From NCBI GenBank assembly GCA_037447605.1, contig CM074814.1, forward strand, positions 496,001 through 560,000: 64,000 nucleotides of DNA, read 5' to 3'. The position numbers were made by a program, and so were the translations under genes. The notes under the pieces are model-generated. The model did no database searches. It was given only the letters and a program-made list of their open reading frames with translations, and had not been told where the DNA came from. Below, piece by piece: positions 15,700 to 24,000 of this stretch. Source of the stretch: Zygnema circumcarinatum SAG 698-1b (taxonomy: Eukaryota; Plantae; Zygnematophyceae). The first letter of the stretch is position 1, and each line of letters starts with the position of its first letter.

Positions 15700-16483
15700 G
15701 GAATAAAACGACAAAATTATTTGACCGTCGTGACTGTGATAAGTTGGACCACATCGTACGGTCACAAAAAACGACACGCCCGCCCGCCCAGGAAAACATA
15801 AATAACTGTACGGCCAGTGACTGTAGTAAAGCTGGCCGACCGTCGGAAATCGGAGGACAGGTGTCGGCTTCTAACTCGAACTGACGGTATCCTCTGACAG
15901 TACATGACGGATTAGCGTGAAAACTGACGAGCGTCAGGACATGGATATCCACGTGGACCAATCATACAACGAAGAACCCCAGCCGTAGTCCAGCGTGGCT
16001 GAAAACCATTGGTCCACGTGGGACTGCCTGGGGTGACGTGCCGACTAAATATTACGCATTGCGGCTCGGGCCATTGCTGCACATTTGTGCAATTCATGCA
16101 TACGTGGCAGATCGCCATTGGAAGACGGTCGGCTACTAAAAAAATGTTAGTTTGACATGGAGAAGGGCCCAAACCGTAAACTGGAAAGTGTTTTTTTGGG
16201 TCTCGTTGCTTCTCAGGTTCTTTCAAAAAATTCAGATTTAATTCACATAAATAAAGCAAAGCAAGTTAATCAAATATAAAAAATATAAAACACAGTCTTT
16301 CATATATATACTTATGCAAAAATTTTGAGCTTAACCGCTCTAGTGCAAAAGTTAACCACCAAATCCTTCAAACCTAACCAACATTGTACGATCAACAACA
16401 CCAAACCTAGACATGAAAACCCCAACAAGTGATAATCCCCAACCTTGTGACGTCACCACTAGACCACATCCCTCATGTGGTGC

Positions 16484-16611
16484 CATCAGAGCATGACATC
16501 ATTCCCATGTCATGTCATCAAAGCGTGACGTCACCCCTGTGTGATCCCATCAGAGCATGACATCATTTCCATGTCATGCCTTCAAAACGTGACGTTACCC
16601 CCATGTTATAC
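16484..16611. repeat. Two imperfect direct copies of a ~64-bp unit downstream of the chitinase stop
   Basis: CATCAGAGCATGACATCATT... begins at 16484 and again at 16548. Confidence 0.7.
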
Positions 16612-16717
16612 CATAAAAAGCGTGACATCATCACCATGCGATGAGGTCCACATATGACGTCATCATCCCCATGCCATGCCATGCCATGCCATCCATGGCG
16701 TGCCCGCACCATCCCCG

Positions 16718-17571
16718 TCAGAGCGCCCTCTTGATGGCGTAGCTGTAGGGCTTCCCGTCCGCCTGGACGTTGTTGATGTCGTTGAAGACGTCCCAGAGCA
16801 TGACGCCGCCATAGTTCGCATATGTACGGATCGCCGGGAGGAGCGTGGAGACCACGGTGCTCTGCGGGACGTACCCGCTGCCGGCGGCGGAGGAGGCGGC
16901 GGGGAGGCCCAGGACCAGCTTGCAGTTGGGGGCGGCCTGAGCCATCCATTGGGACCATCGCTTGAAGCTCTGCAGGCGGCCATAGAGAGGGGTGGGTACA
17001 GGGTTTTAGGGGGGGAGGAGCAGAGGAGAAAGGAAAACCCTAAACCTCAGAAAGAGGTTGAATCTAATGAAAACCCTTTGTGCTTCAGTGATCCCAACAG
17101 GATGAAACAACGCATGTCTTACATTGAAGAAGGTCTGATCATTGGCTTTATATCCGCAGTTGTTGTTGTAAAACTGCACCCAAACGAAGTCGAAATACGC
17201 CGCAGCATCCCCCAAAGCAGTCCCCACGCTTGGCCCGAGCATGGCGTCAGGATAAGGGCACTGCGGCGCCGAAGTGATGAGATACTTCTTGCTTCCGCCG
17301 TTCATCAGGCTCCGAAGGGCCCTCACAAAGGCGGCTTGCCCGACGGAGCCGCCGCTTTCTATATCGAGATCGATACCGTCCAATGGGGCGGCTCCGAGAG
17401 GCCGCACAGAGGAGGAGGTGCCTTCGAGGTACGTATTCCAAATGTAGGCGGCGAAGGTCTGGCCGTCAGAGTCGCTGGAGAAGCCGTACGGGCCCACAGC
17501 ACCGCCCATTGAAAGGACCACCTGGAGATCATCCGAGGCAGAGATCAATGTGGGCATATGTAGACTCTCAA

Positions 17572-17608
<37 letters not shown>

Positions 17609-18906
17609 GAGGGAGAGAGAGAGAGAGAGAGGGGTTAGCATACTTGAACCCCCAACTGCTGGCAGCGCCTGACTTCGGTAGAGAGCTGCACGCATCCTCC
17701 ACTCCCCGGGTCACAGTGACCCGCCAAGTTGAGAGTGGGGGTCCTCCCGGAGCCCCACACATAGAGGAAGCCGAGCACCATAATGTCATACCTCCCACTC
17801 TCACACGCAGCTTGAAGAGTGCCCTCGTTCCCATTCTGCCCCCAGTAAGCAACCATCTTGGGACCCGTCGACCCACTCGGGGGAGGGCCTTTAGGTGAAG
17901 GAGGGGGGGGAGAGCTTTTAGATGAAGGAGGGGGGGGAGAGCTTTTAGATGAAGGAGGGGGGGGAGAGCTTTTAGATGAAGGAGGGGGGGGAGAGCTGGT
18001 AAGCAGAGGAGGTGGTGGGGCGCCCCCTGAGCCTCCCCCACATACGACATTTTGTGGCCAGTCGCACACTTTGGCGACGTTGTTGAATAGGAGGCCGGGG
18101 GGGCAGTTTTGAATGTACTCCATGCCTCCCGAACAGGTACAGAACTGCCTGCAAGATAATGTTGGGGAACATTCGCCATTCATGCTTTTTGCTTCAACCT
18201 CATCACAAGGCTTAGTTTAGGCTTAGTTTCAATACGTTTTGAAATTCCTGAGTCGATTCACATTCACTGAAAAGAGTTCCATTTTCGCGAATGACATGAA
18301 CCCCAAACCTCCAAAACCCCAAAAACCTCACCCGCAGTTCGCAGGGTTTTGCAGAATGGCGCCATCCGGCTGCCCGGAGCAGCAGCTTCCAGAAGCAGCC
18401 GGGGGAGGGGGGCTCTTCAAAGGAGGCGATCTGGGGGGGGGCTTGCTGGGGGGAGGGCCTCTACTGGGAGGAGGTCTCCTCGAAGGAGGAGGAAGCTTTT
18501 GGAGGAGAGGAGGAGGAGGCCTTTTGGGAGGAGAGGGAGAGGGAGAGGGAGAGGGAGGGTTCTGGCATGTTCCGCCGGATGGCTTGCAGCCAACCCCGCA
18601 GTAGTCAGAGGTGGTGCCGCAGTACCCCCATTGGCTGCAGCACAGACTCCCACAGTTGGGGCCAGTTCCGCAGCCGCCGCCGCCGCTTCCGCTGCATTGG
18701 GAGACGCAGTTTCCGGGGGCGCAGTAGTCGGGGGAGGACCCGCAGTAGCCATACTTACTGCAGCAGAGGGAGGAGGCGCAGAGATTGGTGGCGCTGCATT
18801 GCTGGGCGGAGAGGGAGGGGAGGGAGAGGAGGAGGAGGGAGAGGGGTAAGAGGAGGGAGAGGGGGAGGGGGAGGGAGAGGGTGCGGGTGCGGGGGGAGAG
18901 AGACAT
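16718..18906 (-). CDS. Secreted GH18 class III (hevamine-type) chitinase with two hevein (CBM18) domains, a CBM14 domain and SPPPP linkers; 4 exons
   Basis: Exons 18906-18332, 18148-17644, 17521-17123, 16969-16718. Order: signal peptide; CCSKYGYCG and CCSQWGYCG hevein cores; Pro linker; six-Cys CBM14 spacing; 27-bp SSKSSPPPP repeats; then AYWGQNGNEG, LNLAGHCDP, intact DGIDLDIE, FDFVWVQFYNN, YGGVMLW. Confidence 0.93.
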
Positions 18907-19710
18907 TGCGAGAGGGCGAGGCGGGTGGGGGAAGGAGAGCGTTGGGAGAGGGAGAGAGAGGGAGGGGAAGGGTCGAGGCGGCGAGTGGGTGAGCGGGTAC
19001 AAATATATACGGTACTGTAGTGGGGGGCATGTCAGACCAAAATCGACCGTAGGATTTTTCTTTGGCAGCACTACAAACCAAGGATGTGGCATTTAGTGAT
19101 TTTCTTAGCGGAGTATGTTTTGCAAGCTGACAGGTCAGTTTGTTGAGTACTTGTTATGGTTATATTTTATCTGGTTAAAAATTATGAATTTAACCAAAAC
19201 GAGTAGTTTAGAGACATAGAGATCATCCTCCAAATACGTACTCCGCAAAATCTGACATGCCATTGCGTTAAGCGCTACTGACAAGCTGACACACTTCGAT
19301 CAAAATTAGTACATATCTGCGGCTATTTTTAGACAGCGAGTCAAACACACACGTATTGTTTTCGAAAAATAATTCGAAGCGGAATCGTAGATAGCACTCC
19401 AAAATGGACAAAACATTCTTACGTGGCACACAAGTGTTTAGGCTCAAATATTTCCCCACTTGTAAAAGGCCCTTCGGATTGGCTGAATATAACAGATAAA
19501 AAACCATGCATAAGTGTGACGTGTCGCCCTATGATTTGATGGAGTTGAAGCGACTTTATGGCAAGATTGAGATTTCTTTGACCAAAAGGGACGAAATCTT
19601 GAAGCGCCACGTAAGCAAAATTTTGACCACAATTTCCAATTTTTTGTGCGTTTTGTTCCAGGCCATATACGCGCAGTCAAGATCCAAGTCCCCGACTTTC
19701 CCGGCTCTAA

Positions 19711-21009: not shown

Positions 21010-24000
21010 TTACTCACCGTCCTTCCAACTCCACTCCCCTTGATAGTAATTGTTCGGCAGCCCGAGCCAAAACTTAAAGGCTTCAAAGCTCTGCCGCTTC
21101 CTACTCGCCGAGGAACTTCCCGCCCCGTCCTCCTCCTCTCCCTCCCTCCCTCCCTCTCTCCCTCCCTCCCTCCCTCCCTCCCCTGGCCTGCCTGCGCGTC
21201 CTCCCGCTCATGTCCGAGTAGAGTTCTATGAAGAGGCGCTTGTACTTGAGGCGGTCCGCCTCCATCCCCGCCGCCTCCATCGCCCGCACAATCTCCAGCG
21301 CGCGCTGCGCCGCCCACCAAGACATCACCTTAAACCCTAAAACCCTAAAACAACCTAACACCCTAAAACCCTAAAACAACCTAACAACCTAACACCCTAA
21401 AACCCTAAAACAACCTAACACCCTAAAACCCTAAAACAACCTAACACCCTAAAACCCTAAAACAACCTAAAACCCTAAAGTTTCAGAACCCTAAAACAAC
21501 CTAAACCCTAGAACAACCTAAACCCTAACACAACCAAAAACTACCTGAAGCCCTAAAGTTTCAAAGCCTAAAACAACCTTAAACCCTAAAACAACCTTAA
21601 ACCCTAAAACAACCTAAAACAACTTAAAACCCTAAAGTTTCAAACCCTAAAACAACCTAAAACCCTAAGGTTTCAAAACCCTAAACCTCCAAAACTTGAA
21701 AGCCCCAAAAATACCTGAAAGTAGCCCGCCTTGACGCAGACCCTCACAAGGTCGTTGAGGAGCGCCTCGTCCGGAACGAACAGATCATCTCCCACTCCTC
21801 CCACCCTCCCTCTCCCCCTCCACCTCCCACTCCCACTCCCACTCCCACTCCCTCCCCCTCTCTCTCCCCCCCCGGTCCTCCCCCTGCCCTCCTCGAGTCT
21901 CTCCTTTATCTCCCGCCATAGGACGAGTGCCTCCGCGGCGCCGCCCGTCTTGGCGAAACCCTTCACAAGGGTGCCGTACGTGCTAAGGGAGGGCCGGCTG
22001 CCGGAGGCCTGGGAGGGGAGGGAGAGGGAGGGAGGGAGGGAGAGCGTGAGGTGGGAGAGAGAGGGGGAGGGAGGGAGGAAGAGCGTGGGGGGGGGGGGGG
22101 GAAGAGGAAGAGGGAGGGAGGAAGAGAGTNNNNNNNNNNGAAGAGGAAGAGGGAGGGAGGAAGAGAGTGGGGGTGGGGAGAGAGAGTGGGGGAGGGAGGG
22201 AGGAAGAGTGTGGGGGGGATCGAGAGAGAGAGGGAGGGAGGGAGGAAGAGAGTTGGGGGGGCGAGAGAGTGGGGGAGGGAGCAAGAGCGTGGAAGGGGGG
22301 AGATAGCGAGAAGAAGGGGGGAGGGAGGGAGGGAGGACGAGAGTGGGGTGGGGATGGGGAGGGAGGGAGGGAGAGAGAGGGGAGAGGGGGGGAAGGGACG
22401 GTTTTTAGGGTCTTATCGCAACTTGGCCCTCCTCCCTACATAATATCAGCAAGCAATCCAGAATTCTAGCATAAAAAACCCTATAAAAAAAAAAAAAAAC
22501 CCTAACCCCCCCCCATCCATACAATAAAAACCCTACCAACCGGCAAGCCATAAGAAACAACAACATCCCCACCACCCATAAACCCACAACACAAAATACA
22601 AAAAAAACCCAAACCCTAATTTCCTCACCTTCATATTCTGAAAAACTTCCCCTGCCTCCTTCATAAGCCCTGCTCTTGCATATGCATGTATAAGGGCGTT
22701 CCATGCAGGAGTATCAATTTTCAGTCGGCTGTCACGGCTCATTTCCGCAAAGATCCGTGCCGCCAGTTGCGGCTGCCCCGTATTCCCAAACGCTTTCAGT
22801 AAATTTGTGTACATGGGAACAGTTGGTTTCAGTCCCGCCTGCCTCATTTGCTGAAACCATCCAAGGGCCGAAACATTGTCATCGGAATCTATGCATCCGT
22901 TAATGAGAATGTTGTACGTAACGGAGGTAGCACGGATTCCCGCCGATTCCATGGTTTCCATGAGACTGGCCGCCTCTCCGTTCCGTTTCAGGCGACAGTA
23001 TCCGTTGAGGAGGATGTTATATGTGACGGAATTGGCCGGGATTCCGAGTTCCGCCATTTGGACCAATAGGGAGCGAGCAGCCTCCATTTGACCGGCCTCC
23101 GCATAGGCTCCGATTAGGGTTGTGAAGGAAACCTCGTTAGGGGCACATCCGAACTCGTTTTGCATTTCTAGGAGAAGCTGCATCATCACGCAGTGGTCAA
23201 CATAGAACGGGGGGTTATAAGCAGAGAGCCTCCCTCTGTTTTGGCACTCTTAGACTTCAAAAAAAAAATTGGGGTTTTTTGAAGTTCACGGTTATGAAGG
23301 CATGCATGGGGAAAATCTAATTAATGGAGGTGTTATTATACTATGTAACAAAAATGAACACTAAATGTAACTATATGAATTGATTGATTACTTCATGGAA
23401 GGAAAGAAGGAGGAAGGAAACATTGCTAAACGGAAACGGAACGAATGACATAGACCTGCTGGTTGGGGGGGAGAGGGAGNNNNNNNNNNGGGAGGGAGGG
23501 AGGGACGGAGGGAGGGAGGGAGGGAGAGGGGGGAAAACCTCTCTAGCCCAGCTTAGTCTTCCAGCCTCCAAATAGCCCTTCATGAGAATTGTGAGAGTTC
23601 GAACTTGCGGTGTGAGCGAACCCCCTCTCCTCCTCATCTCTCTCACAAGCTCCTCCGCCGCTTCAAGCTCTCCGGAGTTGACGTATGCTGACATCAGCGT
23701 GTTGTATGTCGTCACGTCCGGCTCCACTCCGCTCTCCTGAACACTCCTCATATCACAAATCAGGGTTTAGGGTTTAACACAAACGAGATTCAAACTAAGA
23801 ACAACAAAAGAACCCCTAAAAACCCTACAAACCCTAAAAACCTTAAAAACCCTAAAAACCCTACAAACTCAAATTTAGGTCAGATTACGTCGAACCCTAC
23901 CAAGTCCTAAGAAAAGAAAAACCTCTCAATATCCTCGAATCCTCTGCAAAAACCTCCTTAGAGCCCAAAAAAAAAGCCTTCAAATCTTACAAACAAACCC

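Follow-up and report, generated by a model that had tools for sequence, protein, structure and literature searches.

The 64-kb window analyzed here (the whole stretch from position 496,001 to 560,000 of contig CM074814.1 of Zygnema circumcarinatum SAG 698-1b, a green alga closely related to land plants, numbered from its first letter) carries an intact chitinase gene of four exons on the minus strand (18906..16718). Its product of 576 residues (191 + 1 + 168 + 133 + 83) is probably a secreted, modular GH18 chitinase of class III (hevamine/PR-8 type), in which two hevein modules and one module of the unrelated peritrophin-A family (CBM14) are carried on Pro-rich spacers, and which belongs to an algal family with a varying module array. 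From the sequences compared, this family would comprise class III chitinases of streptophyte and green algae in which the N-terminal chitin-binding array differs from gene to gene and from species to species. The arrays found consist of three heveins, of one CBM14, or of two or more CBM14, and in one case the place is taken by a Cys-rich head without a name. The Zygnema protein does not represent a new kind of protein; what is new is its mix of modules, within a shuffling family that has been little described.

Gene structure

The exons were delimited from the sequence and its open reading frames (ORFs). Exon 1 (18906..18332, minus strand) and exon 2 (18148..17644, minus strand) are separated by a phase-2 intron that lies within the CBM14 (18149..18331, minus strand; borders CGG/GTGAGG..TTGCAG/G, the slash marking the splice site). 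Introns 2 and 3 are both of phase 0 (17522..17643, CAA/GTATGC..CTCCAG/G, and 16970..17122, AAT/GTAAGA..CTGCAG/A, both on the minus strand), and all three introns have canonical GT..AG borders. The 576 codons run without a stop or a frameshift, and no N run occurs between 16300 and 19400. About 100 nt upstream of the ATG there is a TATA-like TATATATTT. No second copy (paralogue) of the gene was found within the 64-kb window. Half of intron 2 is taken up by an (AG)30 microsatellite (17572-17631).

The junctions were compared with a homologous Logan contig, L001 (ERR11260147, 1586 bp), which encodes two CBM14, the first partial and the second full, each followed by a spacer, and then a full GH18 domain. 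L001 runs uninterrupted across all three intron positions, so that the inferred junctions reproduce a contiguous homologue. In the alignment, exon 1 extends to L001 residue 103 and exon 2 continues from residue 105, so that the split codon accounts for precisely the one residue between them. Exons 2 and 3 meet at L001 residues 275/276, and exon 4 follows exon 3 with a difference of two residues in a loop at the site of intron 3, this loop being shorter in the Zygnema gene.

Since the CBM14 is split over the hevein exon and the exon with the GH18 start, assigning the modules to separate genes would leave a broken CBM14. An intact CBM14 requires exons 1 and 2 in one transcript, and exon 2, which holds spacer 2 and the first 71 GH18 residues, ties the CBM14 to the enzyme. 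Judged from this exon organization, the locus is one nuclear gene and a single chimeric unit with all modules physically chained. An earlier note on this DNA had proposed both the single chimeric gene and the phase-2 intron inside the CBM14, and the exon borders agree with it on both counts.

Chitin-binding modules and spacers

Domain and structure searches were run on the single exons. The N-terminal part of the CBM14 at the end of exon 1 (CCSGQPDGAILQNPANC and two bases of the Gly codon that the intron divides; 18332..18384, minus strand) aligns to L001 residues 86-103; it was assigned only through this likeness to the L001 module, a complete CBM14 for which PF01607 gives 59.5 bits. The C-terminal part in exon 2 (QFCTC..CPPGLLFN..CDWPQNVVC; 18040..18148, minus strand) matches PF01607 (CBM_14) by itself with 36.5 bits (E 5e-9, cutoff 22.1) over profile positions 17-53 of 53, the coverage expected when an intron interrupts the domain one third of the way along. 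The earlier note had made such a profile match the test of its CBM14 assignment. In the structure search the same piece matched 4z4a, a fungal CBM14 protein, and tachycitin. The Cys spacing of 14, 5, 9, 12 and 7 residues fits C-x(11-24)-C-x5-C-x(9-14)-C-x(12-16)-C-x(6-8)-C, in line with the canonical peritrophin-A spacing recognized before; the count of six Cys given then was too low, the module having eight, with one extra Cys directly before C1 and another inside the C2-C3 loop. This 8-Cys pattern is common to L001 (CC..NPANC.Q[FY]C.C..CDWP.NVVC), while P0272 and the Hydractinia protein P0022 have the canonical six and the Apatococcus module differs. An Atlas search with the L001 CBM14 returned the CBM14 assignment again, with clusters mostly of arthropods. 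Peritrophin-A is usually regarded as an animal, fungal or viral module.

The start codon (18906) opens a leader of about 34 residues (18805..18906, minus strand) which, judged by eye, is signal-peptide-like, with two Arg, a Leu-rich core and SLSA before QQC. The two hevein/CBM18 modules of exon 1 follow: module 1 (18688..18804, minus strand) has a CCSKYGYCG core and module 2 (18562..18675, minus strand) a CCSQWGYCG core, each with eight Cys and a DYC. Exon 1 matched PF00187 (Chitin_bind_1) in two stretches with 48 bits (cutoff 27.8; Pfam), and pokeweed lectin-C, WGA and hevein among the solved structures of the PDB. The profile match, the 8-Cys scaffold and the aromatic/Ser core (CCS.[WY]G[WY]CG...[YF]C) mark both modules as CBM18, and two hevein domains are what had been read from the sequence earlier. 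They belong to different subtypes: module 2 shares 78% identity with all three modules of the EukProt transcript TRINITY_DN688_c0_g2_i6 (P0156), and the nearest relatives of module 1 are the modules of Mesotaenium endlicherianum ME000413S07060 (P0004).

Spacer 1 (18391..18561, minus strand) is basic and Pro-rich and contains short tandem repeats (PPSPSPSP..KRPPPP..SRRPPP..). Spacer 2 (17857..18039, minus strand) has a Gly-rich start and continues as an SSPPPPSSK repeat, which the tandem-repeat scan resolved into a unit of 27 bp (nine codons) at 17879-17997, in frame, with 4.4 copies and 96% matches. Because of this 96% identity the repeat appears to be a young expansion; strains may differ in its copy number, or the assembly may have the number wrong. 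Of the two linkers that the earlier note called extensin-like, only spacer 2 is of the SPPPP type; SPPPP occurs in it four times, in the nine-residue repeat, and Tyr is absent. A true extensin was considered and rejected, as the Tyr cross-linking motifs (YXY, VYK) are missing; the spacers are extensin-like only.

Catalytic domain

The GH18 domain is spread over three exons, all on the minus strand. Its N-terminal part at the end of exon 2 (MVAYWGQNGNEGTL..; 17644..17856) matched hevamine residues 4-72 (E 1.5e-19) and PPL-2 (E 2.5e-21). Exon 3 (17123..17521) carries the core with DGIDLDIE (17357-17380) and VQFYNN, and matched PF00704 with 51.8 bits (cutoff 29.6; Pfam), CTS1 (E 8e-32) and hevamine (E 2e-29). 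Exon 4 (16718..16969) holds the C-terminal part (GLPA..AAGSGYVP..YGGVMLWD) and the stop codon, and matched PPL-2 (E 9e-15) and hevamine residues 201-263. The three pieces together cover hevamine residues 4-72, 75-192 and 201-263 (rounded E values of 1e-19, 2e-29 and 3e-14), which indicates a complete barrel of the compact class III type; the fit to PPL-2 and to yeast CTS1 is just as good. Counted from MVAYWGQ to its end, the domain has 287 residues with no large insert, in agreement with the compact barrel of about 270-290 amino acids (aa), free of the class V insertion, that defines class III.

The YWGQ, QFYNN and GGVMLW motifs are present, as are the six Cys of the domain (AACESG, GHCDP..GGC..RRCQ, APQCPYPD, YNNNCGY). 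The catalytic DxxDxDxE is intact as DGIDLDIE and aligned with the CTS1 motif. The barrel is apparently active, and the hevamine-type GH18 with an intact catalytic motif that the note had described is borne out over all three exons. An inactive GH18 of the xylanase-inhibitor or lectin-like kind was rejected because the catalytic motif is intact.

Relatives and the module mix

An exhaustive search with exon 3 gave 1577 matches, none of them with an identity near 100%; a word search with exon 2 gave three matches, dominated by Pro-rich words. The best matches of every GH18 exon were algal proteins with CBM arrays (57-66% identity), and the nearest relatives of the GH18, hevein and CBM14 parts are all streptophyte algal. 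The best match over all exons was P0156, with three heveins and a GH18 domain. The Mesotaenium protein has three heveins, a Pro-rich spacer and GH18, and the 'acidic endochitinase' of Selaginella moellendorffii (XP_002976060.2, P0163) has one hevein and GH18. On the CBM14 side, Apatococcus fuscideae KAK9834231.1 (P0024) joins CBM14, a Pro-rich spacer and GH18, L001 matched PF01607 in two stretches together with PF00704, and in a second Logan contig (L002, ERR11260153) the end of a CBM14 stands directly before a spacer and GH18. Given these hevein-bearing (Mesotaenium, P0156, Selaginella) and CBM14-bearing (Apatococcus, L001, L002) proteins, the view that a class III chitinase with CBMs is alien to the plant lineage is not supported. 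A hevein-GH18 protein was also listed from Pelomyxa (P0095). The upstream regions of three further GH18 contigs (L003-L005) were without a CBM motif.

The array is easily lost from protein databases. Automatic gene calling cut L001 and L002 down to GH18-only proteins of 290 aa (P0157, P0159) that start at an internal Met before AYWGQ. The CBM arrays of both contigs are consequently invisible in protein databases, and the family is under-represented there. No poly(A) was found at the ends of the L001 and L002 contigs.

Several matches have features of their own. In the Klebsormidium nitens chitinase GAQ80433.1 (P0007) a Cys-rich head without a Pfam match (residues ~25-125) precedes the class III GH18 domain, and this head may be an undescribed binding module. 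Two bacterial-looking matches, P0005 (an ENA contig with UvrA and ABC-transporter neighbours) and P0013 (CBM2 + GH18), have 57-60% identity to exon 3. A class III-like GH18 with a C-terminal CBM14, unlike the chitotriosidase-type combination of GH18 and CBM14, occurs in the cnidarian Hydractinia (XP_057314705.1; P0022/P0151) and in the metagenome contigs L011, L015, L016 and L033.

The module mix was checked by two word searches over the full length, one starting from P0004 and one from the L001 translation, of 5.8 billion proteins with precomputed Pfam assignments (120 best matches each), by the 150 best of 1.84 billion representatives, and in 36 metagenome GH18 loci. Among the matches listed in all of these, none combined PF00187, PF01607 and PF00704. 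CBM14 was found in four of the 36 metagenome loci, always downstream of GH18 as in Hydractinia, and hevein in none. This absence elsewhere is weak evidence, because the proteins of this Zygnema genome, and probably those of its nearest kin, are not in the libraries. The novelty that the earlier note had claimed for the architecture holds for the exact mix of hevein, CBM14 and class III GH18, found nowhere else among the matches listed, and not for an isolated design: each half of the architecture exists in the green lineage, and it is the mix that was found only here.

The Zygnema CBM14 stands at the position of the third hevein in the closest full-length relatives (P0156, P0004). The arrangement looks like a cassette exchange within one enzyme family, with direction and timing not readable from it. 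A bolder and rather doubtful proposal is that, in the algae that are sister to land plants, chitin-binding cassettes pass between PR-8-type chitinase paralogues, and that the Zygnema gene is a truly unique three-way mosaic. One hevein would be of the Mesotaenium type and the other of the P0156 type, and the 8-Cys CBM14 would be specific to the lineage and have a fourth disulfide. If so, having modules of different types would make the binding to different forms of chitin broader or stronger, and the ancestor of land plants would have had class III chitinases armed with CBM14 and CBM18, of which seed plants later retained the bare barrel.

Several observations weigh against a modular chitinase with a mixed array of its own. 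The 5′ end of L001 is missing, so that the mixed array may not be unique. The PF01607 score belongs to the exon 2 part and not to the joined CBM14. Bacterial and fungal class III-like GH18 domains are nearly as similar as the streptophyte ones, and a tree of exon 3 (71 rows, 132 columns) resolves no streptophyte clade but puts the Zygnema row between a green group and a mixed bacterial/fungal/animal group; no claim of vertical descent or transfer is therefore drawn from it. Finally, no RNA evidence was found for the locus, and the protein libraries searched do not contain the product.

Function and alternative explanations

In the mechanism that we propose from the domain content, the leader would direct secretion, and the three modules would bind insoluble chitin, or the GlcNAc-rich walls of fungi and chytrids, in a multivalent manner. 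The spacers, probably bearing hydroxyproline-linked sugars, would act as stiff, extended tethers that hold the modules apart. The barrel would cleave chitin by substrate-assisted catalysis through the glutamate of DxxDxDxE, and a lysozyme activity would be possible, as in hevamine. A plausible role of such an enzyme is defence against chitin-walled parasites; a putative anti-fungal or anti-chytrid function, with putative anchoring in wall or mucilage, had been suggested in the earlier note.

The protein may be real and yet have its main job elsewhere, as a peptidoglycan lysozyme, in the processing of GlcNAc glycans that belong to the wall or mucilage of the alga itself, or in the scavenging of nitrogen from chitin. 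Lysozyme activity is a property of hevamine-type enzymes, CBM18 and CBM14 bind GlcNAc polymers in general, and the present data provide no link between the gene and infection. Against this, a chitinase barrel with three chitin-type modules is the classical layout for the attack on insoluble chitin, and no chitin-like polymer is known in conjugating green algae; we consider a non-defence role unlikely.

A further alternative is that the gene, although it looks intact, is silent or a young pseudogene, or yields only the short GH18 product from the internal Met before AYWGQ. The lack of transcript evidence and of the product in all libraries searched would agree with this, and gene callers started the L001 and L002 homologues at that very Met. 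Against it stand 576 codons free of stops and frameshifts, canonical splice sites, the conserved catalytic and Cys residues and the TATA-like TATATATTT upstream, which make a dead or shortened gene very improbable.

Least credible is an assembly chimera that joined a hevein-type and a CBM14-type paralogue in the Pro-rich spacer DNA of exon 1: spacer 1 is GGAGG-rich and repeat-like, both parental types exist in relatives and the two heveins differ in subtype, but the region 16300-19400 has no N run or frame break, the frame is held over the 573 nt of exon 1, the window contains no paralogue, and a join made by chance is unlikely to have kept both the frame and the complete order of modules.

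These results show that the class III chitinase, a bare enzyme in seed plants, has streptophyte algal relatives with elaborate chitin-binding arrays, some of which include peritrophin-A. The series of hevein-only, CBM14-only and mixed proteins offers a natural test of what the modules add to the same barrel, and bears on the early building of the defence or chitin-sensing toolkits of the plant lineage.

Surrounding sequence

The palindrome TGACGTCA occurs in 13 copies in the window against 0.41 expected. Three of these copies lie in or beside a tandem array of 32/64 bp (16470-16643, within the region 16448-16662) directly 3′ of the chitinase stop codon. Farther along, on the minus strand at 21673-23751, ORFs with pentatricopeptide-like repeats were observed; the short N runs there (XXXX in the translations) are small assembly gaps in low-complexity DNA rich in Pro, Ser and Leu codons.

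Comparison with known systems

In the paper library searched, no paper pairs CBM14 with the Zygnematophyceae. CBM14 and GH18 are reported to have coexisted since early eukaryotes, the animal layout of GH18 followed by CBM14 having arisen in bilaterians (PMC5459812). In the animal enzymes compared, chitotriosidase (PMC5459812) and Hydractinia XP_057314705.1, the CBM14 is C-terminal, unlike in Zygnema, although the Hydractinia CBM14 resembles the Zygnema one. According to PMC7874618, chitinases of diatoms bear CBM_14, Chitin_bind_1 or LPMO_10 modules, and the TpChi family of Thalassiosira pseudonana resembles the Zygnema protein in comprising chitinases with CBM_14 and also with Chitin_bind_1 or LPMO_10. 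The diatom chitinases, like the animal GH18-CBM14 enzymes, differ from the Zygnema protein in catalytic subfamily or module order.

Within the green lineage, P0004 and P0156 share with the Zygnema protein the leader, the hevein array, the Pro-rich spacers and the hevamine-type GH18 (59-64% identity in the GH18 exons), and differ in having a third hevein at the place of the CBM14 and no PF01607. L001 and L002 share the 8-Cys CBM14, the Pro/Ser spacer and a GH18 of 57-66% identity that is contiguous across the intron sites; L001 differs in having at least two CBM14 and no hevein in its assembled part, which lacks the 5′ end. The Selaginella protein, with its one hevein, and the Apatococcus protein, with its one CBM14, likewise continue with a Pro-rich spacer and a class III GH18, but each carries a single module of one family, and the Cys pattern of the Apatococcus CBM14 is different. 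Among the seed-plant class III enzymes (hevamine/PR-8, 2hvm and 1hvq; PPL-2, 2gsj), the likeness extends over nearly the whole length of the catalytic domain, with the DxxDxDxE, the Tyr of QFYNN, the Trp of MLW and the six Cys in common; in contrast to the Zygnema protein, those among the matches listed are single-domain proteins of about 300 aa that carry no CBM.

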